Source: Salisapilia sapeloensis CBS 127946 (Eukaryota > Protista > Oomycota). From it: a DNA stretch of 37,398 nt. How positions within the stretch are numbered: position 1 is the stretch's first letter; each line of letters opens with the position of its first letter. Where the stretch lies: NCBI GenBank assembly GCA_023334545.1, contig JAADVB010000189.1, positions 1 through 37,398 of the forward strand, written 5' to 3'. Below are positions 1 to 21,819 of the stretch, piece by piece. The notes beneath the pieces were generated by a model, which saw only the letters and a list, made by a program, of their open reading frames with translations, was not told the origin of the DNA and did no database searches. Made by a program: the position numbers and the translations under genes.

Positions 1-665
1 GCCACGATCGGAATGCCGAGTCGTTCCTTGACCTCGTACGCCTGCGTCACGAGTGCCATGGACGCCAAGCCATAGAGACGATGGTTGTCTTCGGAGCAAT
101 GGACTTCACAGAAATGCTTATAGTATGGGCCCATGTTGGCGTTAAAGTAGCGCATGGCACATACGATGATGCCGTAGTCGTACTTGGGCGCAATACCATC
201 GACTACTTCTTGCTCCTTATTGTATTCCTGAGCAGCTCGCTTCAGTCCGTTATTGACACTAGCAAGCACTTCCTCCAGAGACATTCTGCCTGGATCAACC
301 ACCAATTGCGGCGCAAAGCGAGCCTCAAAGTACCGGACACCAATGGCATATTGATCACATCCGAGCTCATACGCCACACGTTCCAAGGCGTCAGTCGTAC
401 CAAGGACAGCACACGTATAGCTAAAGCACTCGAGGTACTCTTCCAAACTATTGTACGTCTCTTTAAAGACAGTGGTGTTAAGCTCCTTTGCGTCATACGT
501 TGGCAGCTTTACGCCTTGTTCCTGTGCAAGGTCGATAAGCGTTTCTGGGCGAATGCATCCGTCCAAGTGACAGTGAAGGTCTGTCTTGGGTACTCGACGT
601 AGGAATTCATCCGGGAACTGGTCGTTTTTAGGGAAAGAGGTCTTGGTAGAGTCGTCGGAGCTCAT
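1..665 (-). CDS. ADA: Adenosine deaminase (5' part; CDS continues beyond the left window edge)
   Basis: Open minus-strand frame from ATG at 665 to the edge, 221 codons: MSSDDSTKTSFPKNDQFPDEFLRRVPKTDLHCHLDGCIRPETLIDLA...SLEEYLECF...ALERVAYEL...GVRYFEARFAPQL...GIIVCAMR. PKTDLHCHLDG is the metal-binding HxH motif of the adenosine/AMP deaminase family. It is absent from the ORF track because no stop lies inside the window. Confidence 0.92.
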   Translation of the reverse strand, partial: MSSDDSTKTSFPKNDQFPDEFLRRVPKTDLHCHLDGCIRPETLIDLAQEQGVKLPTYDAKELNTTVFKETYNSLEEYLECFSYTCAVLGTTDALERVAYELGCDQYAIGVRYFEARFAPQLVVDPGRMSLEEVLASVNNGLKRAAQEYNKEQEVVDGIAPKYDYGIIVCAMRYFNANMGPYYKHFCEVHCSEDNHRLYGLASMALVTQAYEVKERLGIPIV

Positions 666-950
666 GATCTAAGAGGCACGGGCCGAGGATCTGTAAAATG
701 TTTTTCAGAGGATGATGGCCATATGAATGATGGTCTTTGATCGCTTTGCCACGTACTTCAAGTTGGTATGAAAAGCTAGTACTGGTCTATCGATCCATGT
801 ACAGTAGAAGATGTATTTACTATCCCTGTCACATCCAAGACACAAGCAAAAGCTGATATGAACGACTCATTGAATGGTAACTAGTTTTGTTATTGATATC
901 AAGTTGAGATGACGAACTCGTGACAAGTTTCGTTGCGCTAGAAAGATATT

Positions 951-3900
951 CTAATCGTCGTCGCCGTACAATGCCGACTTGGACAGCAGCACTGGCATTT
1001 GAATCGGCAACCCGGCTGCAATCTTACTCTCGACTTCCATCGCTTCCACGCGCATATTAAACCACCTACAGAAGAAACATCGTCAGTACATCCACCCCCG
1101 ACTCTAACAACATATAAGTAAACGCACTCTTTCACAGCAGCAGTCGAGTACGGCCATAGATTCCTCGGAATCTCCTCCGCCGCTTTTTCATTCCCAGCAA
1201 GACTCTCCAACTTGCCATACGCATCCTTGGCATCAAACTTGAGCGTCACTTCATCCTCCTTTCGTGCAGCCGTCTCCGCATTCGCGTTCTGAGTCAAGAC
1301 TTCGATCCAGTCTCGCTGCTCTTCAAAGTTCGAAGCGCACAGGACAAACCTCGTGTACCCACTATCGACACTAAAGCAATGGAAGAGCACGACGCGTGTG
1401 CCTTGGGACTGATCCATCTGATTCGGCAGCTCCTGCACGACACTCCCGATGACATTGATCTCTCGTTTCACAGGACCATTCTCCGTATCCGAGTACCCAA
1501 GCTTGTTATTCTGCAAGTAAAAGTGTTTCGGTTTCCACGTATTCTTGTAGATAGTCCCTTGTTTCAACAGCATCCCCTTCTTTTTCCACGTCGCTTGTGG
1601 CACCTTCTTCCCAGACACCACTGCTTCCTTCGACACGTGCGCATCCATATACAACTTGGCCGCAGCGTAGATGGATTCAAGCCGTCGATCGAACTTGAGC
1701 TGGATGTTCTTATCCATCTTCGGCTGGATGTCTGCTTTGTTCGGGGCAAAGTCTTCCGAGATACTGCGCGTCTTCTTCAATGTCGTATCGTGCGCTCCGT
1801 CCGAGTTCCGGCGCTCGACCTTGCCATTCCTTTCGACAGGAGACGACGTCGCGCGTCCAAAGCCACCGCTTGGGGATTTCGGTGACGCCATGGGTGAGTT
1901 CCGAGGCGAACTGCGTGGCGATGGAGACTCTTTACGTGGTGTAGACGATCCCAAGCGTTTGCTTACTGACTCGAGGATGTTGCTCGCACTGTACGACCTC
2001 GAGCGTCGGTTTCCTTCACCTGAATTGTCATTCCCGAGTGACTGGTTAAAGTCGTGTGCGACGGCATCAATCTGTCGACGACTATGTGGTGGTGTATTGA
2101 CAAACGAAGCTCCTTGCTGCGTCCATCCATGCGGCTTCATTGCTCGGAACGCAATGAGCGTTTGGAAAAAGTTGCGTACTTCTCGACTCCAATGCAAAAA
2201 GAGTCGGTAGAAGCACCTCAAGAGTTCAAATCGAAGTTTATCTGCATGTCGTTCTGGGAAACAGTCCCAACTATTGTAAATGAACTCGAGTGTCGTGAGT
2301 ACGACTTGCGTATGTTCAGAATCTAATAGAATACGTAAGGCAGAGCATAGGAAACGAAAGTCAAACGAAGGCGGGAGTAACGACACTTCGTCGTCGGCTG
2401 GGATCGAGTACTGGTCGTCCTGATGGAAGTTCCATCGGTCGTTATTCTCCAAGTGTGATAGGCGGTAGGAGCCGAGTCGAACACGCCAGCTTCGGATCAT
2501 GTACATCCAAACACCAAGGAGTTCAATCGCACCAATGACTGCCGGAACGTCATGGACACTCGTGCTCCGGAGAAGGAACTTGGTCATCGGGTTAATCAGC
2601 CGAGGGTTCGACAGCATCGTACACGACACTTTGTAAAGCGATGGAGGTAACCAGCCAGACTTTTGCGTCTTCAACTCCAGAAAGAAAACCTTTAACACTT
2701 GCGTGTATCCGGGCAGATGCGACCATCCGATCTTTTGGTTCAACACTGCAAGCGTATCAAGTACATACCAGAGCCACTGGTCTACTAGTAGAATATTGAG
2801 CGTATTCGTTTCTCTCGTAAGTCGACGGAATCGAGATTTCCATGCTTCCGATGTAATCTCATACTTATCCTCGGCCTCTTCTTCCTGTGCTTTCAATGCC
2901 TTTTCACCAAACTCGTCATAAATCGCTTTATGGAAACGCCGCCAATCTAAGTGAGCTTCCAATCCATCCATAGCAAACAAATCTGCGCTTGCACTGATTT
3001 GAAAGTCCGATTCAAGTTCCGGGACAAACTCTTCATACGAGTCTGCCCAGAGCTGATACAATTCGACACCAAACGATGGTAGACGGAAGCACAGGACCGA
3101 GAGAATGCGTGCGGCGAAGAACATCAAGTTGTTGTTCATCACGCCACGGACACTAACCGTCTGTAGGACACAGTACTTGGTTTCCACGAGCATCGCACGT
3201 AGTTTCAGTCCGAACTCCAAGTCTTTCTTGGAGATACATGGCGCAGGTTTCGATCCAAACGCAGGTGCAGACACGGTCGAGTCGAAGCCAAGCAACGGCA
3301 AGTCGCTCAACTCGGCACGTTTCACGAGGTAGAAGAGAAGCTCGTAAAAGACATTACGCAACGTATAGTGTCGGACCCGAATGTTATCTAGTAGGAACTG
3401 CCACAAGCGCAGCAAAATGTTTTTCGTCTCGTCCAGAGCTTCCGCAGAGGCGTAGACCCACGACAGCATCGATGCTTTATGAGAGATCTGGAGCATCTTG
3501 AGGACCTTGGTCGCCTTCCGAACCTTGGCTTCTTTATCATCCTTCTGACGCACAGCCATGAGCTCCACGAGATCCTGCATCTTCTCCAACACTCGCTGCG
3601 CTTCCGACGGTATCACGACCTTTGCTTTTCCCTGGAGCTTACGAGAAGTCCCGCCGACGATGACAGAGCTACTAGACGAGATACCGTGTTCGCTAATGAC
3701 ACCACAACGTAGCTGTCGGACGTCTGGAATGCGTTTGAACAAGAGTGTGCCGTAGATAACAGCTACTTGATGTCCCTTTAGCGTCAAACTTTGCTCAAAG
3801 TGGCTCGTGACGAGATAGTCGGATAAGCCCAGTCCGTCTCCTTCATCACTCCCATCCATCTTCCGACGCATACGCTCTTGCAACGCGTCTTCAAAGCTCT

Positions 3901-5110
3901 TTTCTAACGACAGCCAGGTCTGACCAAAGAGAATAGTGTTCTTAATCTCGTCATCGACTTCCACATCGTCCTTACCCTTGTTCTTGAGCTCTTTCTTGTA
4001 CTTTTCTAGTAACGTCGTGAAGCCACCATCCGGATCCGTTGCGATTTGACCTCGTCCGACCAAGAGCTGACGAATCTCAAGCGTTAACGTCGCAGACATG
4101 AGCTCATCAAACGTACTGTAGCGTGTAATTGGTGGCAAGTAATCGTTTGCAGTCGACCACGAGACGGAGACCGGATCTTCCGTCGGTAGCAAGTCATCCA
4201 TCAACTCTTCTTCTGCTCCTGTATCACTCTGACTAGGCAATTGCTGCGAGTTTGGTCGTGATACTCGAGATGACAAGACAGCGAGACGAGCAAGAGATTG
4301 GAAACTAACTTCCTCCACCTCTGCGATCGATCTCTTCTCAGCATGTTTTAATGAATTACCCATGTAAAACTTTTCTCGCGTCCCGATCGTACACTTGTAA
4401 CTGACGGCGAATCTTTTTAGTGGGAGAGAAGTATCTTCTTGGAAATCATGACCTTCTGGACGATCCATCTCGTTCGCGATACTTGGCATCATGATACCAA
4501 CGTCACTCACCGAGATATTCCATTCGCTACATTGCTCCATATAGCAATTAAACACGACACGACCGTTGTCACAACCTGCGAGATGATGGTCATGATGGAC
4601 AGGGCCAGTGGAAATGGTCCATAGGTCGACTTTTGCACTTCCGATGAGAGCTCTGGAGTGGAACGTCCGGTTCGTGAAGACTTTAACCACGAGCGATTTT
4701 TTTGATAACTCTGCAAGAGTCGTTCGATACTCAAACGCGATTAAAAGTCCCTTGTAATTCGGGTTGAGATCTCCTTTAATCACAGGTGTCGAGTACGGAG
4801 ATTTCTCGTCCGGGTCGTCCCAATAGAACTCGACGAACGGATCGCTTTTGCTGCTAAACTTGCGTGGTTGCAAGTTCCGACATTGAATACCTGAAATACG
4901 AACTCGAAATAAACAAGACGTGTCTGGCGTTGACTCCTTGTGGGACTCAAACATGGACTGCAGTGTGTAGCGCGGACTGAGCTTTCGATTGGCGTTTCGT
5001 ACCGGATCGTACATTTCACCAAATTCAATCGTCGCAGCTGAAAGACCGTTTATTGAATCTTGATTCGCACTTCGGGGAGATGTGCCCGAGCTGCTCGTCG
5101 GTGAGTTCAT
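951..5110 (-). CDS. Large C2-domain / DUF1765-like / PH-domain protein (~1365 aa; join 5110-1128, 1065-951)
   Basis: N-terminal C2 (VRISGIQCRNL..KSDPFVEF..TPVIKGDLNPNY..LIGSAKVDL). Helical region with LFLHWSREVRNFFQTLIAFR, resembling DUF1765. PH domain (KKGMLLKQG..WKPKHFYL..LGY..FVLCASNFEEQRDWIEVL). A 62-nt GT..AG intron (1066-1127) with a TACTGAC branch site restores the C-terminus AVKEWFNMRVEAMEVESKIAAGLPIQMPVLLSKSALYGDDD*. Confidence 0.8.
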
Positions 5111-5393
5111 GCTGTTAATGTGGTCGGAAGGACGTTTGCTTATTTATGTGTCTTTCGAGTATAAATGGCACACCAACGTTGTACGAGTACGACTAGGAAA
5201 GGCACAGCAGGTATGAGAAAAAGAGGGAAGGTCGTGCACTGGCGTCCAAGGCGGTCTTCTTCTCGTTCTTCGCCGCGACAAGTTCGGTCGCTTCTCGCCT
5301 TTTTCTGGTGTGTGAGTATATCGGCGCTTTGGCTCAGCTTTGACGCGCTGTCTGGACACCGGACAATATGATACAACCAGACACGTCCGAACG

Positions 5394-5416
5394 CACGTGA
5401 TTGGCGCAAATGACGT
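5394..5416. promoter_or_regulatory. Clustered CACGTG, ATTGG (reverse CCAAT) and TGACGT motifs upstream of the C2-PH gene
   Basis: The sequence CACGTGATTGGCGCAAATGACGT lies ~290 bp upstream of the ATG at 5110, in the divergent intergenic region. Confidence 0.35.
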
Positions 5417-6270
5417 GCCAACTCGTCTTGGAAGTGATATTGAAGTTGAGATGGGGCTATGGAAGACACGATGCTGAGGCAGGGTGTCTCGAGGCATTAC
5501 ATGTTCATGAATATGGGTTTGTAAACGAGGTAGATATGTTGGATGTATGGAGCGGGTGGGCAGGAGATGGGTTGGAGATGCGGGGTTACCACTGTGCGGT
5601 ACGCTTGTAGGCGGTACGTTGGACGCCTAGGTGTACGAAAAGCGGATGAAAAGCTGCTAAAGATACTTTAATCGACGTCGGTTGAGGGTCGATGCCATCG
5701 TGCATGTCCAGGGCAATCGGATAGCAGTATGAACCATTACGATATAAAGAAGCGCTTGTAGTACCTTTTAAGCCAGTTTCATGGATGCAAATCAATGACG
5801 CATTAGTTCTCTTCCGCACGACTAGACTCTTCTTTCTCTCGCTTAAAATGAATCTACACACTTTTACTCCAAGGACAAATAAGTGATGAACACATCGCTA
5901 TGACACTTGCCAGAATTTTCTACGCACATACTATTTGAAACGCTCGGTCGAAACCGTGGCGACAAGCACTTGCACGATTTCATCCAATTCCATCTTTCTT
6001 TTTCCTAGAACATGTAGACCGTACTTGATACTTGCAGTCGAAACCCCCTTACAATAAAGATGCAGTAGTAGACTAGACGACAGCTTACGCATCCCAACTA
6101 TCTTTCGTTTTGTATAGACGAAACGTCAGTCGGACAGCAGCGCATCCTCAAGGGTTGCGAGCACTAGACCGAAGAAAATCGTTCTCACTTACGATCTCGC
6201 GCGATTCGAAGCAGGTCGCTAGAGCTATTCCATTATAAAAGCATTTCGTGAGCACCTTCAGAAGGTAGAC

Positions 6271-8511: not shown

Positions 8512-9705
8512 TTACTTGGCAAGTATTGAAATCATTTCTGACTCTGCACTGTCCCATTCATGTGGAGCATCCAGAGCATCGATTCCATCCCACATGACAT
8601 GGAAATGTCGTTGGCTCTTGGCGACAAGGCTCACTCCTCCAAGCATCAATGGGACGATATAAAGCAACGCGGGTTGACCTGATACGACATCTCTCAGTAG
8701 AATCGTCATGACGTTCGCTAGTAGTAGCCCGACTGCGTACGTTGCAAGGGCGACGGCAAAGTAGTCTACTTTGTGCTTTCGTTTGAACTGATGCGACTGG
8801 AGAGCATAGTCAAAGCGTAGGCAGAAAGCAACTAGTAGGCCTGGTAAAGCGATGTCTCCCATGCCCAAGATACTACGTCGCGGCTCGGGAGAGAAGAGGA
8901 CAGGCACGGTGAATAACATTGGGACACCGTCATGAGTAGTGTTATGCTCCGTATCCATTCGATTGTTCCCAGTAGCCACATCTACCATGACGTTGCTGCC
9001 GAAAATGTATGGAGAGACGTAGACAAAGAAGATGTCGTAGGCAAAGGCAGTGAGAAGCAGGCTGAAGGCTACTCGTAAGGACGCTAGCTGCAGCCAGTCG
9101 AGCACTGTTAAGCAGAGTGTGGCACACAAGATGTCTTGGAGCACCCAACCGTAAGAGCTGTCTCGATGCCAATACCACATCACCACAATGCTGAGAGATA
9201 CGAGTGAACTGAGACCAAGGACGAGCAAGTAGGACCGATCATCAAGATGTGGTCGCAGCCGAAACAGTTTATAGCACACTGGCAGCACGACCACATTCGT
9301 GAGTGCGATGGTAGCGCCCATGACAAAGAGCAAATTGACAAGTACCAAGAGATTGACATAGTATAGCAGTAGGAGAGTGCCGGAAGCAGCGAGTAAAAAG
9401 TAGATGGCATGGCGACTCGATAGTCGAAAATGAGGTTCACCCTCGCTATCCAGTACAATATGGTCTGTCGATTCCGGAGATACTTCCACGTCCTTGAGAA
9501 CCTCATCGATGCTACCATACCCACTCTTGTTCTCCGAGCTGCTATTGCGTTCATCGATTGCTATCTTGGCTGATGGGTGGAAAGCATCCTGTCGCGTCGT
9601 CAAAGCCGATCGCTCTACTCGACAGGCATAATAGGCTCCAACAGCTACGACACTGACGCCCATGAGCCACATAAGAAGCATCGATGCATTCCAGACACCC
9701 GACAT
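8512..9705 (-). CDS. Signal peptide peptidase-like intramembrane aspartyl protease (A22B, SPPL2-type, no PA ectodomain)
   Basis: Multi-TM protein with the catalytic YD (FAYDIFFV), GxGD (LGMGDIALPG) and PAL (GQPALLYIVP) motifs. Confidence 0.92.
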   Translation of the reverse strand: MSGVWNASMLLMWLMGVSVVAVGAYYACRVERSALTTRQDAFHPSAKIAIDERNSSSENKSGYGSIDEVLKDVEVSPESTDHIVLDSEGEPHFRLSSRHAIYFLLAASGTLLLLYYVNLLVLVNLLFVMGATIALTNVVVLPVCYKLFRLRPHLDDRSYLLVLGLSSLVSLSIVVMWYWHRDSSYGWVLQDILCATLCLTVLDWLQLASLRVAFSLLLTAFAYDIFFVYVSPYIFGSNVMVDVATGNNRMDTEHNTTHDGVPMLFTVPVLFSPEPRRSILGMGDIALPGLLVAFCLRFDYALQSHQFKRKHKVDYFAVALATYAVGLLLANVMTILLRDVVSGQPALLYIVPLMLGGVSLVAKSQRHFHVMWDGIDALDAPHEWDSAESEMISILAK

Positions 9706-9798
9706 GCCTCGGGTCGATCGGTACGAGATTTGTCGGCTCGTTCTTACGACCTTCGAGCAACTTTACTAATAGGTACATCATACCGCATGCGTCTGGCT

Positions 9799-11019
9799 AT
9801 GATGGAGTCTTCCGGGGAGCAATGGCGAAATCTCGTGGCGTTCTGGTTGCTAGGTTATATCAACAACCTCGGTTATGTAATCATGATTGCTGGTGCCCAA
9901 GAGATCTCTGCTGGCGGTGTCGGTCTAGTCTACTTTTTTGACATCTTCCCTGCACTCGCCGTCAAACTCACGGGTCCGTATTGGTTCCCTTATGTCTCCT
10001 ATCGTCTGCGGACGTTCGCCGGGTCCTGTTTCATGCTCTTGAGCTTTTGGATAGTTGCTCTTGGACAGCACTCGCTGTCATTACAGCTACTTGGAGTCGC
10101 CTTCTCCGGTCTCCAGTCCGGTATGATGGAAGCATCCTTCCTGGCTTTAGCCTCTTTCTATGACAGTCGCAAGTGCATCACGTGCTGGTCGAGTGGCACT
10201 GGTCTTGCTGGTGTAGGTGGATATGCCTGGGTTGCCACCATCCATCTCTGGCTCGGCTATAGCTTTCCTACTACGCTCATGCTTGCATCAATCTTCCCTC
10301 TTGCCTACCTCCTAGTGTTTATCGTACTCCTGGATACGAGTCATCTCCCTGTCCCAAGCAACTGCATCTACTCTGCGATTCCAGAGACTGATATGGATAA
10401 AACAGAGGCACAGAAGGCATTCCAGCCATCGACATTAAGTAGAGACACAGAGGAAGTAGAGGCTTTACGAGGCACACGCCAACGTCTACGCTTTGCAATG
10501 ACACTCGGACCGTACATGATCCCATTGACTGTCGTCTACTTTGCAGAGTACACGATGCAGACAGGTGTATGGTCCGCCATCGGCTTCCCCGTCCACGATG
10601 AAGCAGCCCGCCAACAGTTCTACGCGAGCGCCGGTCTGTGCTACCAAACCGGTGTCTTCCTCTCTCGCTCTTCCGGTGTCCTCTTCCAAGCGACAAGACG
10701 AGTGCTGTATCTAATGCCGGCACTCCAGACTCTACTCCTCATCTTCTTCTCGCTCGTTGCGACGTACCACTTCTGGTACAACTGGTCTCTCCTCATCTTT
10801 TGCTTCATTGCAGGGCTACTAGGCGGAGGTGTCTACGTAAATGCATTCACACTCATATCCACAGAGGTAGCACCCAGCCGAGTAGAATTTGCACTGAGTG
10901 CTGCTTCCCTCGGTGACACGGTGGGTGTTATGATGGCCGACTTGGCTGGACTAATACTACAAGGCTGTCTCTACTCTATCAATCGACTACCTGGAGCTAC
11001 GGTCAACATCACGTGCTAA
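9799..11019 (+). CDS. CLN3: CLN3/battenin (BTN1) lysosomal/vacuolar membrane protein (~406 aa)
   Basis: RNLVAFWLLGYINNLGYVIMIAGAQEI, WSSGTGLAGVGG, PLTVVYFAEYTMQTG, YQTGVFLSRSS and GLLGGGVYVNAF are CLN3-family motifs. Probable start at 9799; the upstream ORF extension overlaps the SPPL gene. Confidence 0.92.
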   Translation: MMESSGEQWRNLVAFWLLGYINNLGYVIMIAGAQEISAGGVGLVYFFDIFPALAVKLTGPYWFPYVSYRLRTFAGSCFMLLSFWIVALGQHSLSLQLLGVAFSGLQSGMMEASFLALASFYDSRKCITCWSSGTGLAGVGGYAWVATIHLWLGYSFPTTLMLASIFPLAYLLVFIVLLDTSHLPVPSNCIYSAIPETDMDKTEAQKAFQPSTLSRDTEEVEALRGTRQRLRFAMTLGPYMIPLTVVYFAEYTMQTGVWSAIGFPVHDEAARQQFYASAGLCYQTGVFLSRSSGVLFQATRRVLYLMPALQTLLLIFFSLVATYHFWYNWSLLIFCFIAGLLGGGVYVNAFTLISTEVAPSRVEFALSAASLGDTVGVMMADLAGLILQGCLYSINRLPGATVNITC

Positions 11020-15022: not shown

Positions 15023-16620
15023 TCATGTGATGATCATTTCTTTGTCGATAGCTTCAACAAAATAGCTTCTTCGATGAAATACTACTTCATGCAAAGTAGT
15101 ATCTGCATCTTGCTCACTGCGTTTAAGCATGACGGTTATTGTTTTACTCCACGCAAAATACTTGCATTTTGTATGGTGAGTGTTCAACGTTTGCTTCGTT
15201 CGAAATCGATGTAAGAAACATATTTGAAAAGCCCGCGAAAAGCGTTTGTCGAAGAGCCACGGATATGCAGTAACTTCAAAAGATTGATTGTAGTATTTTA
15301 GAGCTCTGTCGAATTGATACTGCTTGTCGGACTCTAGTCTCGATTGTCGTGAAGACATAGTAAAGTTAACAGATAGATCTTCTAGAGACAAGTGTCAAGT
15401 CAATAGCACCAGACCCCTACTCTTTCTAGCCACGAACGGATGTACATCTTTCGATGCTTCCTCTTTTAAATGACTTTGCATGAACTAACAATTTGTAGCT
15501 TGAATATCAAGTCTTTAGCATGCTATGGCTAGCACGCTTCTTGTGCCCAAAAGAGACCAATTTTGGAACGTAAGAAAGCTAGGTTTCTGCTACGTAGTAG
15601 AGCAACACTCTCTTTGCATCCATAGCAGTCTACCTACTGCGCAAACACTTTTAAAGGTGCATTCAGCAGCGTTCGATTGCCCTGTCTATTGCTGCAGCCC
15701 GTGTTTCCGCAAAGCATCCGTTGCTTCTGAATCTCTTCATCACCTGCTGCATCTCGCCCTGAAGATTAGAGATTCTACAAACGTTGCTTCCTTCAGATTT
15801 TCTACGTATCTCGTACGACAGGCTCGCTTCGCATTGTGGTGGATCGTAAAAAGATCGTGTAATGATGCGCGTGCCAAGTAGAGGATGAAGAAGGTTTATG
15901 GCATTTACACTTCAGTACAAACAAGAAACGATAAGACCAATTGATCGAGTGAATTATACTTTTAGAGCAGAGTGGTAGAGAACGAGAGTAGGCTGTACAC
16001 ACTCTGCTCAACAAAGAAAGAGGGTTAAACCAGAAAGATTCGATGACTCGTGCTAGATGGAAATGCAGACCCTTTCTGGATTCTGTGTTGGGTAATAGAT
16101 CTGCACATGGATATTCGTGTGCCTCTTCTTTCGCTCCGCGGTAGCAGAATCTGTGCTATCGAAACGCAATGCAGCGCAGTAGCTGAACGCTTGCCATCCT
16201 TCACGATGTACCAAAGACCTCTAGCCAGAAGATCGTGTTCGTCTATGCACACCACGCGAGCGTCGTTGCTTCAGAAATGCTGTTTGCGCATTGCCATACT
16301 GCACTCAAGAGCAATTAGAAGTGGACAACAAGTACGTGTCATCAGCGCCTCTAGTCGCTCGCACGTTTATTGCAACGATTGAAGATCGGGGTTAAAGCAG
16401 TAGTGGACCAGATAACGAAATTGTCTACCATCGAAAAGAACTGAATGGCTGGAGACTTCGATGAGCTATCGATCCTTCCTTACTTGGTGGCTGTTTATCT
16501 TTTTCTATCCCTCACCTTTCTATCCATTAACTGCCGAAGCTTCGTGATAGGATCGAATGGACACGGCAGACAAGGAAAAATTCTGGTGCCATACGTCACA
16601 TAGAGCGCTTTCGATTCGAC
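15023..16620 (-). other. Unresolved intron-rich or decayed minus-strand locus
   Basis: Several ~50-120-codon open stretches (e.g. VHREGWQAFSYCAALRFDS.., VNAINLLHPLLGTRIITRSFYDPP.., and ORF 15023-15391) are separated by intron-sized GT..AG segments. I could not splice them into one frame. Confidence 0.3.
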
Positions 16621-16672
16621 CGTCGCGTGTGTCTGCACGTTGAAGTTAACAGCTCAGCCGACGACGACGGGC

Positions 16673-16704
16673 GGTCATCTCATGCGAGTGGAGGTCATCT
16701 CATG
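16673..16704. repeat. 12-bp direct repeat GGTCATCTCATG x2 (20-bp period)
   Basis: Exact copies at 16673-16684 and 16693-16704, in a divergent intergenic region ~30 bp from a CCAAT box (GACCAATAG, ~16730). Confidence 0.75.
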
Positions 16705-16989
16705 AACAGGAATCTGTTCGATGCCATCTGACCAATAGAAAATAAACGCAAGCGCGCGGTGGTAGGTGCGAAGTGTGCCATCCAGTCAGATTTAATATTC
16801 AGTTTCAGTCTACCTCGAACCAACACGAAAAACCAAATTCCTTGTGGTGACTAATGTCGACTGTCGCACTTTTGTCTGACGTACCCTCATCCAATCCACT
16901 GGATACGACACGTCGCAGGAACCAATGCCGCTCAAGCTTCAGTTTCCAAGTTGTGACCTACCGCACAAGTGACCACTCGCATTCAAACA

Positions 16990-17382
16990 ATGGGCATTCG
17001 ACCGCAATTCAAATCCGGTGCTCTACAAGTGCACCACCACCCGGCCGCACATTCGGGACAGCATGTCCTTAAGAAGAAGACCAAGAATGTGCCGCAATTG
17101 CCTACGCGTGAACCTACACCCATGGAACGTGAAGTTGCCGAGGTCAAGGCAAAGGTACTGAAGAACTATCCGCACAAGCAAACGCGATTCAGTGTGAGCC
17201 AGATGTGCCGGGTCGGTGCTCCGATCCAGGCACCGATGGATGTCATGTGGACCCGTGTCCCTCGAACGATTGTCAGCGGCAAGGCTGTGCCGTTCACTGT
17301 GACCAAGCACAGATATCGTCGACGAAAGATGATGAAGCCTCTTCCATCCATTCAAGAAGAGCGTCTTCGAGCAGTTGTATAA
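16990..17382 (+). CDS. Small basic orphan protein 1 (130 aa), C-terminal LPSIQEE motif
   Basis: Intronless ORF with the ATG preceded by an initiator-like CGCATTCA. Shares motifs with the two downstream orphans. Confidence 0.65.
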   Translation: MGIRPQFKSGALQVHHHPAAHSGQHVLKKKTKNVPQLPTREPTPMEREVAEVKAKVLKNYPHKQTRFSVSQMCRVGAPIQAPMDVMWTRVPRTIVSGKAVPFTVTKHRYRRRKMMKPLPSIQEERLRAVV

Positions 17383-17393
17383 CTCGATACTCG

Positions 17394-17428
17394 AGCGATA
17401 GGATAGTACCCAATAGCGATAGGATAGT
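17394..17428. repeat. 14-bp direct repeat AGCGATAGGATAGT x2 (21-bp period)
   Basis: Exact copies at 17394-17407 and 17415-17428, immediately after the stop of orphan 1. Confidence 0.7.
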
Positions 17429-17767
17429 TAGCACCAACGCGTCTGTCGTCCGCAATGTCTAATGGAGAGCAAGGTTGCCCATGCGCGCGTCACTGGTCTT
17501 GTTTCCATACTTGTACAGGACAAATTGCTCGAGGCGGCACAGACATTTCAATTTATTTACAATACAAACCATCGAGTTTATGCATTTAAATAATTTCTTC
17601 AATCTTGTGATTGCTGCCAATGCCTACCATCGTTTGCGCAAGAATTGTCATCTATTCTCTCTGTACCCAAAGTTGGGTTTGGTCACCTGGATTTGCATTT
17701 GATCTAATCGACTTCACTCTGTTCAAATAGAGTTCTAGTGGCTTGGACATCATCTAGCAACTCATCG

Positions 17768-18358
17768 ATGCTAAAAGTTTTGCGTTTCAATAGTATTCGT
17801 CGTGTACAATCGCTAGGAAGAATGAAATCTTCGAAAGACGTGTCTGTAGCTGTCGATCCCAGCCGATCACACAATGTACGAACTGTAAAGTTTTCGACAC
17901 ATCTTGAAATCTCCATCCTTTTGCCGATCATGGGAGCTACCACGCCGGACAACAGTCCTAGCTCGCTTGTCGATGTGGAACGTCGAGGGAAACGATCGAA
18001 CCGCCCAAGACGACCCTCGATGCCGTCTCTAGCATCAGACGGACGACGGCATGCCACAACGGATGTGGAGCGTAAAAACGAGCCTATGAGATTCCTACAG
18101 GACGTCGAAAGACTTAAGCAACACATTTTGTATACGCATCGGATCAAGTTTTGGCGCTTCCGGATTCAACAGATGAAGTTCTACGCGACGCCACCGGTAC
18201 TGATCCCTCCCGTCGTCAGTGGAAATCCAAAGACATGCATGATTTACGTTGGAGGCCGGCGTGTTCCGGTGACTCGACAGCATGCCAACAATTTACGTCG
18301 TCATGTTTTTCGTCACGGTCGCATGACACCACTGGAGGAGAACACATTATATAAATGA
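17768..18358 (+). CDS. Small basic orphan protein 2 (196 aa), RTVKF and C-terminal MTPLEE motifs
   Basis: Intronless ORF with its first ATG at 17768. Central DVERLKQHIL..FRIQQM motif and C-terminal PLEENTLYK resemble its neighbours. Confidence 0.65.
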   Translation: MLKVLRFNSIRRVQSLGRMKSSKDVSVAVDPSRSHNVRTVKFSTHLEISILLPIMGATTPDNSPSSLVDVERRGKRSNRPRRPSMPSLASDGRRHATTDVERKNEPMRFLQDVERLKQHILYTHRIKFWRFRIQQMKFYATPPVLIPPVVSGNPKTCMIYVGGRRVPVTRQHANNLRRHVFRHGRMTPLEENTLYK

Positions 18359-18768
18359 CCCTTCTCGTCATACGGAGATGCGTGTATGGATACCGACATA
18401 TTGCTTACTCTATATGCATCCTTCATGTTGTTCGGTTTCCAACTATGTCACTATGAATGATGTTGATCGTGGTAATCGTGTGGATACGATGACATGTCGT
18501 CTCGTGTGGGATTATTCTTTCGGTCCAGCGCGCTCATCCCATCCCGCCGAGATGACGAGTACTCATGTATCTTCCAATCAACATGCTGGATGTCGTCCGC
18601 CACGTCCCAAACCCTTGATTTTGTCCAATCACAGCGCTCTAAAGGCAAACATCAATTTGGACATGTACCTTGAAGTGTCGCTTCGCGTCAACTATGCTTG
18701 GTGTGATAATCTCTTTGCAAAAGTAAATACTGTCCACGCGAATTCGTAGCCACAATCCGTTTGAAGAC

Positions 18769-18781
18769 TCATTTCCATATT
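18769..18781 (+). promoter_or_regulatory. Oomycete-type initiator (TCATTTCC..ATATT) for orphan 3
   Basis: Matches the YCATTYY initiator consensus, 38 nt upstream of the ATG at 18807. Confidence 0.5.
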
Positions 18782-18806
18782 CGCGATTCATCGTAAACAT
18801 CGAATC

Positions 18807-19169
18807 ATGGGTTTCCACTTGCTGCGTCGTGGTAGTCCCCACTCCAAGAAGAAACATGTTGAAGAGCCTTTGGATACTGTTGTAACCAAGTTGCCCAAGC
18901 ACTCGATTGAAAAAGTCCCGCTCGCACCAGTTTCAGATATAAAACCCGTAGAAGCGAGAGCTCTGGCAGAGGTTCGACATATAAAGTCACGTATCAAGCG
19001 CCGGCCACACCATCGCTACTTTAGTTTTGATCACATGAAACATCGATGGGGAGGCATCCAACTACCAAAGAAAGAGCCTATCATGCCCATGACTCGCACA
19101 GAATGGCACAAGATCTGTGCACAGCGTCGCAAGTTAAGTCCACTTCGAGAAGATGTCATGTACACGTGA
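18807..19169 (+). CDS. Small basic orphan protein 3 (120 aa), C-terminal LSPLRED motif
   Basis: Intronless ORF with an initiator upstream. Central AEVRHIKSRI..HRYFSFDHM motif and C-terminal PLREDVMYT. Confidence 0.68.
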   Translation: MGFHLLRRGSPHSKKKHVEEPLDTVVTKLPKHSIEKVPLAPVSDIKPVEARALAEVRHIKSRIKRRPHHRYFSFDHMKHRWGGIQLPKKEPIMPMTRTEWHKICAQRRKLSPLREDVMYT

Positions 19170-19893
19170 GACACCCCCAGTCTATTGTACATATTTACTT
19201 GAAATTCCGTGGAAAATTGACTTCCCGCGAGATGCATTTCGTTGAGCCTTCCAGCTCCATGACAACGTCGATCTTAATTAAATACATTCGCACTGTGACT
19301 TTATATGAAATCCACACTGTTCATGTCAAGTAGTATTTATATATATGCTGATCTGCCTCGACACCCTAATATGAGCTACGCTTCCTGCGCACGGGAGAAA
19401 GTTGCATGTCCGTTGTACACCGGAAAATTTTTGATTGGAGCCACGACCTTTCACAGCATCCCACTTCAACTTCTAATCCAATCAGCATTCAAATACGGAT
19501 ATATCCCGGATAATGTTAACTGATCCTCACGTCCGCGCGACGTCAGAATCAGAAGCAGTGCCAGAAGATCCCTTCATCCCTCCTTTTGGCCTCTCTTTTC
19601 ACCTCCAAGTACGTTGTCTTGCAACTCTACTCTTGCGTATAATCTACGACACGAATGCACCCAAGACAAAATCATCTTATAACGTCTGAAATGTCCGATT
19701 AAAGATATATGGTTGCTACACTTGACTGCGCTTCCTCATGCGCTTTCCTTGTGCTATGATCATTGCTGCATATCGTGACCACTTCCCTCCCATATACAGA
19801 CACAATTGTGCTGTAAAATTGCATATTTCTATTGCATTTATCGCTTGCTATCACCAATTACTTGTATCTTTACTAACTCTACTTGTAGCAGCC

Positions 19894-21819
19894 ATGCAGC
19901 GATATCTTCGTCCTAGCACTACCCGTCAACATCTTGTACGCTCCGTTCGCTACTTTAGCAGCAACGACTACGTCCAGAACACGACGATCCCAACGTTCCA
20001 CTTCCAAAAGAGTCTTCCTCGTCTCCCAGTCCCGAAACTCGACGACACGCTCCGTCGATACTTGGACTCGGTGGAACCTGTCGTATCTCCGGATCAATTC
20101 AAAGAAGCCAAAGCTGCCGTGGAGAAATTCCGTACAAACCAAGGTCCAGAACTCCAACAAGCTCTTATCGCTCGTGACGATGCGCACAAGCACACTTCCT
20201 ATATCAACAAGTGGTGGGGTGAAATGTACTTACAAGACCGTCGCGCCCTTCCAATCAACTACAATCCTCAGATTAAGCTCAAGGAAGATCCAGTGGCTGC
20301 TAAAAATGCGCAAAACCAACGTGCAGCTTCGCTCATTGCGTCCTCCGTTCGTGTCTTTCGAACACTTCGTGACGGACGACTCGAACCGGACTTGTTTAGC
20401 TTAAAACCAGACATCTCTAGTAGCAATGCGTTCAAGTATTTTTGTAAATTCTTGCCGGAATCTGTCTCATTCTACGGCGCCGCAGCACTTAGCTCGTATC
20501 CGCTCGATATGAGTCAATATGAACACTTATTCGCATCGACTCGTATCCCTCGAGAGATGGAGGATGAGCTACAGAAGTTTAACGACACTCGACACATTGT
20601 CGTGCAACGTGGGAGTCGATTCTACAAGTTCGATGTGCTGAATGAAGACGGGAGTCAAGTCCCTGACGAACAAGTTCTCGCGCACGTCGACTCGATCCTC
20701 CAAGAGCCTTTGCAATTGAGCTCCAAGGAAGAGCCTGGAATGGGGCTCATGACGACGTTAAAGCGAGATGAATGGAACAACGCTAGGCAAGAGCTCTTGG
20801 CATCCGGTGATGTGAATAAAGAATCACTCAAGGCGATCGACAGCGCTCTCTTCCTCGTCTGCCTTGACCACGAGTCACCGACGACTCGACCAGAGTACGG
20901 TCGTCGGTTCCTCGTTGGTGATGGCGCCAACCATTGGTTTGATAAGAGCATCCAACTCATCGTCGCAGCTAATGGCGCAGCGTCCGTCAACTTTGAACAT
21001 GCATGGGGTGACGGTGTCGCTGTCGTGCGTTTCTTGAACGAACTTTTTACGGATAGTATCTCTCGTCCTGTCCTAACTTCCTCCTCTTCTGCTCCATCGC
21101 ATGAATTAACGTGGCAACTAAATGATAAGTCGAAGAAGTCGCTTGTCGATGCTCACGAGACGTTTGCCAAGTGGAACGATCGATTGCTCTTTGAAGCTGC
21201 TGAGACACCAGTGTCCAAGGCCATTGGGAAGCAGTACAAGATCGGAACGGATGGGATCATGCAGCTAGCCATTCAACTCGCACACTTCCGTCTGCATCAG
21301 AACTTTGTCTCGACGTACGAAAGTGCTAGCACAGCAGCCTTCCGTCATGGTCGAACGGAGACGGTACGATCATGTACGAATGAAGGTGTCGACTTTGTCA
21401 AGACCATGGTTGATGCCAGTGCTTCCAACGCTGATAAGGAACAAGCCTTGCGTACAGCCGTAAAGAAGCATAGTGAGCTGACGAAGAATGGGGTCATGGG
21501 CCAAGGGTTTGATCGACACCTCTTTGCTTTGCAAAAGATGGCAGAGCTGGAAGGACAGCCAACGCCGGAGATCTTCAAGACACCAGCTCATGCTGTCATG
21601 AGCCACATTATCATCTCCACGAGCACATTGACCAGTCCAGCGTTGGAAGGTGGTAGCTTTGGTCCCGTGAATGAAGACTGCTACGGCATTGGCTATGGCA
21701 TCGCAGAGGAAGGTTCACTCTTCCAAGTGTCCAGCTATCGTCAGGACTTGCCGGATCTGACCAATCTCTTGGCACAAAGTGTCATGGACATTGAAAAGGT
21801 GCTTGCGAATAAAGACTAA
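19894..21819 (+). CDS. CPT2: Carnitine O-palmitoyltransferase 2, mitochondrial (~641 aa)
   Basis: Arg/Ser-rich transit peptide (MQRYLRPSTTRQHLVRSVRYFS), then TFHFQKSLPRLPVPKLDDTLRRYL, NHWFDKSIQLIV, catalytic FEHAWGDGVAV, STYESASTAAFRHGRTETVR and GQGFDRHLFAL. Confidence 0.95.
   Translation: MQRYLRPSTTRQHLVRSVRYFSSNDYVQNTTIPTFHFQKSLPRLPVPKLDDTLRRYLDSVEPVVSPDQFKEAKAAVEKFRTNQGPELQQALIARDDAHKHTSYINKWWGEMYLQDRRALPINYNPQIKLKEDPVAAKNAQNQRAASLIASSVRVFRTLRDGRLEPDLFSLKPDISSSNAFKYFCKFLPESVSFYGAAALSSYPLDMSQYEHLFASTRIPREMEDELQKFNDTRHIVVQRGSRFYKFDVLNEDGSQVPDEQVLAHVDSILQEPLQLSSKEEPGMGLMTTLKRDEWNNARQELLASGDVNKESLKAIDSALFLVCLDHESPTTRPEYGRRFLVGDGANHWFDKSIQLIVAANGAASVNFEHAWGDGVAVVRFLNELFTDSISRPVLTSSSSAPSHELTWQLNDKSKKSLVDAHETFAKWNDRLLFEAAETPVSKAIGKQYKIGTDGIMQLAIQLAHFRLHQNFVSTYESASTAAFRHGRTETVRSCTNEGVDFVKTMVDASASNADKEQALRTAVKKHSELTKNGVMGQGFDRHLFALQKMAELEGQPTPEIFKTPAHAVMSHIIISTSTLTSPALEGGSFGPVNEDCYGIGYGIAEEGSLFQVSSYRQDLPDLTNLLAQSVMDIEKVLANKD

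Follow-up and report, generated by a model that had tools for sequence, protein, structure and literature searches.

A family of small basic oomycete proteins with a conserved C-terminal motif resembling a PP2A-B56 docking signal

Three transcribed genes of an oomycete protein family

The 37,398-nucleotide stretch of Salisapilia sapeloensis CBS 127946 analysed here (contig JAADVB010000189.1; hereafter the window, whose forward-strand numbering is used throughout) is eukaryotic DNA of about 48% G+C. It contains a row of three short open reading frames (ORFs). ORF1, ORF2 and ORF3 are separate, intronless, transcribed genes that belong to a family of small basic proteins occurring across the oomycetes. 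The family ends in a conserved motif similar to the LxxIxE signal for the B56 subunit of protein phosphatase 2A (PP2A).

16990-17382, + strand: ORF1, 130 amino acids (aa)
17768-18358, + strand: ORF2, 196 aa, with a long unique N-terminal extension
18807-19169, + strand: ORF3, 120 aa, a degenerate family member without PPVxIP...VxGK

All three frames lie on the same strand at the positions and with the lengths given for them in an earlier note on this DNA, and the basic composition described there is borne out, with pI values of 11.4, 11.6 and 10.6 for ORF1, ORF2 and ORF3, a K+R content of 19-22% and a proline content of 8-10%. ORF2 ends at 18358 and has two start options, the ATG at 17768 (196 aa) and a GTG further upstream (206 aa).

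Expression was assessed in four public sequencing runs from one study with two samples, in the form of assembled contigs with k-mer depths, which cannot fix transcript ends. The runs are RNA, because their contigs show GT..AG spliced joints (16485>16550 and 19608>19705). Contigs over ORF1 extend from 16845 or 16983 to 17585 at a k-mer depth of 549-6264, compared with 260-750 for the acyltransferase gene downstream and about 20 for the flanks. Contigs over ORF2 (17752 or 17808 to 18388 or 18687) have a depth of 8-19 and those over ORF3 (18734-19300) a depth of 12-21; the two ORFs are joined in one contig of one run, which is no proof of a single transcript. Transcription, which the earlier note had left to be checked, is thus very deep over ORF1 and low over ORF2 and ORF3.

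The proposed check for selection likewise points to constraint on ORF1. Its closest paralogue in the same genome (C486:26059-26445) is 73% identical, and the comparison gives a dN of 0.175, a dS of 1.07 and a dN/dS of 0.16, with identities of 81%, 89% and 54% at codon positions 1, 2 and 3. ORF1 is a real gene and is very highly expressed.

The kinship of the three proteins is not provable from the trio alone, because their pairwise BLASTP similarities are weak (E = 0.004, 0.33 and 30). A six-frame search of the 22.4-Mb assembly of the organism recovered the C486 paralogue of ORF1 and further open paralogues, less closely related, on C59, C523 and C512. A profile of these first paralogues added C1300 (402 bases including the stop) and C902, which brings the family to nine dispersed members in the genome. 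When 1.84 billion representatives were searched exhaustively with HMMER, 72 public relatives passed the cut-off of E <= 0.001, 40 of them at E <= 1e-10. The named relatives are all "hypothetical" or "uncharacterized" oomycete proteins, and come from Bremia lactucae, Plasmopara halstedii, Phytophthora boehmeriae, Hyaloperonospora brassicae, Peronosclerospora sorghi, Globisporangium ultimum, G. splendens, Aphanomyces astaci, A. euteiches, A. stellatus and A. cochlioides. The family spans both peronosporalean and saprolegnialean oomycetes.

Identity between the window proteins and the public relatives that match them best is 30-45%, which marks the organism as a distant oomycete-type lineage. As a guard against circularity, a hidden Markov model (HMM) was built from the 72 public sequences with the window proteins left out; it recovers ORF1 at E = 1.7e-22 and ORF2 at E = 2.2e-22. 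ORF3 is matched at E = 1e-4 (11.7 bits, in two collinear fragments), and BLASTP of ORF3 against the public family members gave no match. A word-index protein search returned nothing with the alignment of the nine own-genome members and two matches only with that of all 81 members. This reflects a limit of the index and not an absence of relatives, since the exhaustive search found 72.

The earlier note had described the three ORFs as orphans kept as a lineage-specific cluster. The nine dispersed members and 72 public relatives contradict the first term, and the distribution over both oomycete groups, together with the dispersal within the genome, contradicts the second. Its description of a family of small intracellular proteins, basic, old and diverged, that corresponds to no described family is supported by blank searches. 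In Pfam, no family recurs at E <= 0.1 among the three ORFs and all 81 members, including the Endosulfine/ARPP19 and PP1 inhibitor families. A profile search of PDB sequences gave nothing below E = 0.5. In the literature we found no paper that joins LxxIxE with oomycetes and none that names any of six accession or locus names of family members. The protein family is new, with no Pfam entry, structure or literature, while the motif class, B56 LxxIxE with a basic patch, is already known.

In a maximum-likelihood tree, ORF1 pairs with the C486 copy (support 100/79). ORF2 and ORF3 sit on long unresolved branches (3.66 for ORF3) and group neither with ORF1 nor with each other, which rules out a recent tandem triplication as the origin of the trio. 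Small clusters of the family occur elsewhere too, since two convergent members lie about 1 kb apart in Bremia lactucae (CM033814.1; L027 7992-8381 on the + strand and 9359-9820 on the - strand). The loci of relatives that were fetched (this Bremia locus and Logan contig L028) have no neighbours in common with the window. Two public relatives, P0001 (260 aa) and P0045 (226 aa), each contain two copies of the family module in one predicted protein; they represent genuine tandem fusions, or else gene models in which neighbouring family genes were merged.

Family members have a length of about 120-200 aa and a pI of about 10.5. The alignment of 81 sequences (nine from this genome and 72 public; A4) shows a variable, low-confidence N-terminal region followed by a C-terminal module of about 85 residues. 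The module contains, in order, an amphipathic helix E..LK..I, the block RFS[LF]S.M[KR], PPVxIP, V.GK.VP.T[KR].MW, a basic helix or patch, and the terminal motif [LM]-[DEPS]-x-[IV]-x-E. In ORF1 numbering, P82 and E123 are invariant and P78, V79, V95, G97 and T103 nearly so. The central motif that had been noticed in the trio is the family block E..LK..I....K..RFS..M. All ordered blocks are present in ORF1 and ORF2; ORF3 is without PPVxIP and VxGK and keeps the other blocks in order. At the opposite end of the protein, 22 of the 81 members start with MG, many as MG-[ILV]-x-P-[QP]-[FL] (including ORF1, C486, P0003, P0005, P0007, P0009 and P0011). Position 6 of this conserved N-terminus does not fit the usual preference for N-myristoylation.

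Structure prediction with AlphaFold2 and alignment A4 gave a pLDDT of 74.9 and a pTM of 0.39 for the full ORF1 protein, and 84.1 and 0.44 for the module alone. On these models the family proteins appear to be extended, largely non-globular and built of linear blocks. The terminal motif is modelled as coil near the C-terminus, in a region predicted to be accessible and non-globular. Foldseek found no match to the full model or the module in the PDB. The VIA wide fold search peaked at Z-scores of 2.2 and 2.0, compared with the 7-8 typical of models without a match, and the ESM Atlas yielded no usable match, whether by shape (TM <= 0.35) or by features.

The conserved C-terminus and possible docking to PP2A-B56

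The ELM-type pattern for B56 ligands reads [LMFYWIC]..I.E or L..[IVLWC].E. The corresponding elements of the trio are as follows.

17311-17337, + strand: basic patch of ORF1 (residues 108-116), directly N-terminal of the terminal motif
17341-17358, + strand: terminal motif LPSIQE of ORF1 (L118-E123), followed by E124
18323-18340, + strand: terminal motif MTPLEE of ORF2
19134-19151, + strand: terminal motif LSPLRE of ORF3, with Y at +4

The three motifs are located where they had been claimed, each 5-7 residues from the stop. The accompanying claim that each ORF ends in a B56-type LxxIxE tail stands for ORF1 and ORF3, which fit the strict pattern; ORF2 is a near miss (M..L.E) that aligns to the motif column of the family. 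The glutamate of ORF3 aligns to the invariant E column.

Motif counts were anchored on the invariant glutamate, which is present in all 81 sequences. Position 4 of the motif (-2 relative to this residue) is I in 64, V in 12 and L in 5, and thus one of the three throughout the alignment. Position 1 (-5) is L in 45 and M in 9 (L or M in 54 of 81), and P in 25. At position 2 (-4), the counts are D 29, E 10, S 9, P 9 and T 5, with D, E, S or T in 53 of 81 members. Arginine and lysine are commonest at -7 to -10, and together account for 50 of 81 residues at -7. The glutamate is a median of 5 residues from the C-terminus, and an aromatic residue (Y, F or W) occupies +4 in 37 of 81 sequences, often as the very last residue. 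Just under a third of the family (26/81) reads [LMV]-P-x-x-[IV]-x-E, with L, M or V at -6 and P at motif position 1. Within the last 45 residues, 51 of 81 members contain the strict pattern, compared with 4.9% of composition-matched shuffles; among the nine own-genome members it is found in six and missed by ORF2, C523 and C512. Positional conservation had been set beforehand as a test of the docking proposal, and the motif residues do not vary freely.

The genome contains a possible partner. A canonical B56 gene, interrupted by introns, is located on C989 (PF01603, E = 8.7e-130), and a second, divergent B56 gene on C433 (PF01603, E = 4.3e-86). The latter (C433:38560-39666; L024 1288-3036, minus strand) has an uninterrupted frame of 582 codons with an N-terminal extension and an acidic tail, and its product keeps an HRLYYK segment at the pocket position.

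The earlier note had suggested an AlphaFold-type complex prediction with the B56 of the organism itself. We modelled residues 91-130 of ORF1 with one exon-sized open piece of the C989 B56 (279 aa). The complex score was 0.75 in all three runs and 0.01 for the best control; at least 51% of the contacts are common to the runs, and the pLDDT of the partner is at least 48. The mark for this score is reached by 51 of 78 solved complexes and by 2 of 108 mismatched pairs. The motif is placed in the predicted pocket, where L118, I121 and E123 contact K58, H62, Y65, G66, E101, I102, S105, I106 and N108-A111 of the B56 piece. These residues fall in the segments HRIYGKF and EILGSIINGFA, which we take to be equivalent to the LxxIxE pocket of HEAT repeats 3-4 in human B56. 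The ORF1 tail is, in the model, compatible with the B56 pocket. Such a pass indicates compatibility and not binding as such, because the model can remember complexes of already solved families, and the score is uncalibrated for peptides and disordered chains.

Affinity for B56 is higher when a basic patch lies no more than about 15 residues N-terminal of LxxIxE, an effect exerted through a conserved acidic patch (Wang et al. 2020, PMC7108865). The arginine/lysine cluster of our family sits where the basic patches described in PMC7108865 do. This cluster of basic residues and the LxxIxE tail may form a bipartite docking signal, in which the tail would insert into the HEAT 3-4 pocket of B56 and the basic residues would meet the adjacent acidic patch. 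Docking of this kind would tether the rest of the small protein to the PP2A-B56 holoenzyme. More speculatively, the docked protein could be a B56 substrate, a competitor of other LxxIxE clients, or a targeting subunit, and the RFSxS block, a candidate phosphosite, could be presented to the catalytic subunit. The roles put forward in the earlier note (phosphatase adaptor, inhibitor or decoy) are equally hypothetical. In this scheme ORF1 is the abundant copy, ORF2 a low-level one with an added stretch at the N-terminus, and ORF3 an eroded one in which both ends of the module are kept. We put the probability that the family tail docks to PP2A-B56 just short of one half.

Several observations weigh against docking. 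Proline at motif position 1, seen in 26 of 81 members, is disallowed by the published pattern, which ORF2, C523 and C512 miss as well; the pattern itself is low in information and frequent by chance. The conserved tail is longer than a B56 signal, its +4 aromatic is not explained by B56 docking, and constraint covers the whole module, beyond the tail. The complex prediction, made with a single exon-sized piece of B56, may reflect the memory of the model for solved B56-LxxIxE structures, and peptides and disordered chains lie outside its calibration. High abundance and a pI above 10 would equally suit a structural binder of nucleic acid, ribosomes or cytoskeleton. On an alternative reading the family is real and its tail no B56 signal: the sequence [RK]n-L-[DP]-x-I-x-E-x-[VI]-x-aromatic-COOH would be one of several linear blocks by which an abundant, basic and extended protein binds another partner, for instance nucleic acid, chromatin, ribosomes, the cytoskeleton, the flagellar apparatus or a different docking domain, and its likeness to LxxIxE would be coincidental. 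We consider this a serious alternative, of a probability appreciably below one half. It would accommodate a motif that exceeds the B56 core by an aromatic residue and a fixed distance to the C-terminus, and in which one third of the members shift the leucine by one residue. It would also suit the conservation of the 85-residue module as a whole, with its invariant P82 and the nearly invariant P78, V79, V95, G97 and T103, the high family pI, the very high RNA depth of ORF1, and a model that is locally confident and non-globular, like proteins that fold onto a large partner. However, the residue preferences are close to those for B56 (I > V > L at position 4, the invariant E, acidic residues, Ser or Thr at position 2, and a basic patch on the N-terminal side), the complex prediction reached its mark while the controls stayed clean, and no search suggested an alternative partner.

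The status of ORF3 can be weighed separately. It may be a decaying copy, a transcribed relic that has lost the central core and yields no working protein, a reading that its weak, fragmented profile match, the blank BLASTP comparison with public members, a deletion of about 13 residues across PPVxIP...VxGK, the long tree branch and low RNA depth would all fit. We nevertheless think decay rather unlikely, as the frame is open for 120 codons from its ATG, the N-terminal helix block, FSF.HM, MPMTR, the basic patch, LSPLRE and the Y at +4 are kept in order, and the gene has RNA contigs of its own. It is extremely improbable that the three frames are open by chance within non-coding transcripts or untranslated regions (UTRs). 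The near-noise pairwise similarity within the trio and the blank word-index search would agree with chance frames, but the dN/dS of ORF1, the 72 public proteins matched by profile, the public-only HMM values of about 1e-22 for ORF1 and ORF2 and the nine open paralogues in the genome speak against them, and for ORF1 and ORF2 the idea is already contradicted.

Taken furthest, the docking proposal would give oomycetes a family of abundant small basic proteins that is dedicated to regulating PP2A-B56 and has diversified into paralogues, with a C-terminal basic-patch-plus-LxxIxE anchor as its defining invariant feature. Its members would be titratable competitors or inhibitors, or targeting subunits, that set the availability of B56, in analogy to ENSA/ARPP19 for B55 and evolutionarily unrelated to them. 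We regard this extended version as unlikely.

Flanking sequences and neighbouring genes

The sequence around ORF1 is related to the paralogous C486 locus over more than the coding region.

16581-16844, + strand: upstream (promoter-side) region of ORF1
16845-16989, + strand: 5' leader of ORF1
17383-17585, + strand: 3' UTR of ORF1

Homology between the two loci begins at about 16581 and ends at 17585, the end of the RNA contigs. The upstream region is 64% identical to C486, compared with 37% farther upstream. The leader is drawn from 16845, where the deep contig of run X3 begins, and a conserved core that overlaps it (16820-16898) is 94% identical to the paralogue. In the 3' UTR, where RNA contigs end at 17584-17585, identity is 82-85%; past 17585 it is 43%. 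The UTR sequences (16820-16898 and 17383-17585, compared with C486:25881-26046 and C486:26456-26633) are therefore closer to each other than the third codon positions of the coding sequence (94% and 82-85% vs 54%; dS about 1.07). They were found only at the window and C486 loci and match no Rfam family. This pattern, read from the sequence comparison, suggests conserved post-transcriptional or promoter-proximal control elements in the ORF1 and C486 UTRs.

An upstream ATG at 16854 opens a frame of 72 codons (16854-17072, + strand) that overlaps the ORF1 start out of frame. The ATG and the first 14-15 codons are almost unchanged in the C486 paralogue. Its presence in the transcript is uncertain, as the starts of RNA contigs range from 16845 to 16999.

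Low-level RNA is found just upstream of ORF1, at 15941-16874. It contains a 64-base GT..AG intron (16486-16549) that is spliced in some RNA contigs and retained in others, and the region has no match to the small-protein family profile. Rfam matched no RNA family over 16500-19400. The downstream neighbour of the trio is a carnitine acyltransferase gene at 19738-21819 (Pfam PF00755, E = 3.5e-173). A GT..AG gap of 96 bases just 5' of this ORF, at 19609-19704, is skipped in RNA contigs of two runs and is a real leader intron of the gene.

Significance and comparison with known systems

The oomycetes include major pathogens of crops and animals, and much of their proteome still consists of unnamed "hypothetical proteins". 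Three apparent orphans have here become part of a defined oomycete-wide, highly expressed family with a clear domain plan and a specific, cheaply testable hypothesis, tail-dependent docking to PP2A-B56. If docking is true, a short docking motif would here, unusually, form the invariant core of an entire family of proteins and not an add-on, and the regulation of PP2A-B56 would become accessible beyond animals, fungi and plants. If docking is false, the family is still well delimited and must have a conserved partner, because its conserved module of about 85 residues is non-globular and without known fold.

Other phosphatase motifs were considered for the central blocks. The family block [KR]-x-V-P-[FLMY]-T is superficially similar to the RVxF motif for PP1, for which the consensus is [RK]-x(0,1)-[VI]-{P}-[FW], with Pro excluded at x and F or W required. 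The block reads K-A-V-P-F in ORF1, R-R-V-P-V in ORF2 and I-M-P-M in ORF3. An RVxF reading is ruled out by the near-invariant proline at the excluded position; in many members the F is replaced by L, M, V or Y. The calcineurin motifs PxIxIT (for PPVxIP) and LxVP (for K.VP) are a poor fit as well, with Pro at position 2, Val instead of Ile, and no Leu at position 1.

The closest parallel is with PP2A-B56 clients that combine LxxIxE with a basic patch, such as KIF4A, RepoMan/CDCA2, NHS and AIM1 (PMC7108865). Common to both are an [LM]xx[IV]xE core with an invariant E and an acidic residue, Ser or Pro at position 2, a Lys/Arg cluster a few residues N-terminal of it, an extended or disordered context, and insertion at HEAT 3-4, which is predicted here. 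In those clients, however, the motif is a small add-on in large unrelated proteins, whereas here it forms the family-defining C-terminus of a small protein. The oomycete proteins further differ in the LPxxIxE reading of one third of them and in their conserved +4 aromatic close to the C-terminus; their docking is a prediction.

ENSA/ARPP19 for PP2A-B55 and BOD1 for PP2A-B56 offer an analogy for a role as competitor or inhibitor, being small, abundant, largely unstructured proteins that each address one PP2A holoenzyme. They have no sequence or profile relationship to our family (Pfam was blank on all 81 members), their docking mode differs, and an inhibitory role of the oomycete proteins is pure inference.

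Within the oomycetes, the LWY-type RxLR effectors of Phytophthora are secreted, folded repeat proteins that hijack host PP2A by replacing the B subunit on the host A/C core. They resemble the present family as oomycete proteins that engage PP2A, an interaction predicted in our case. In contrast to these effectors, the proteins described here have no signal peptide, LWY repeats or Pfam match, and would dock to the B56 of the organism itself.

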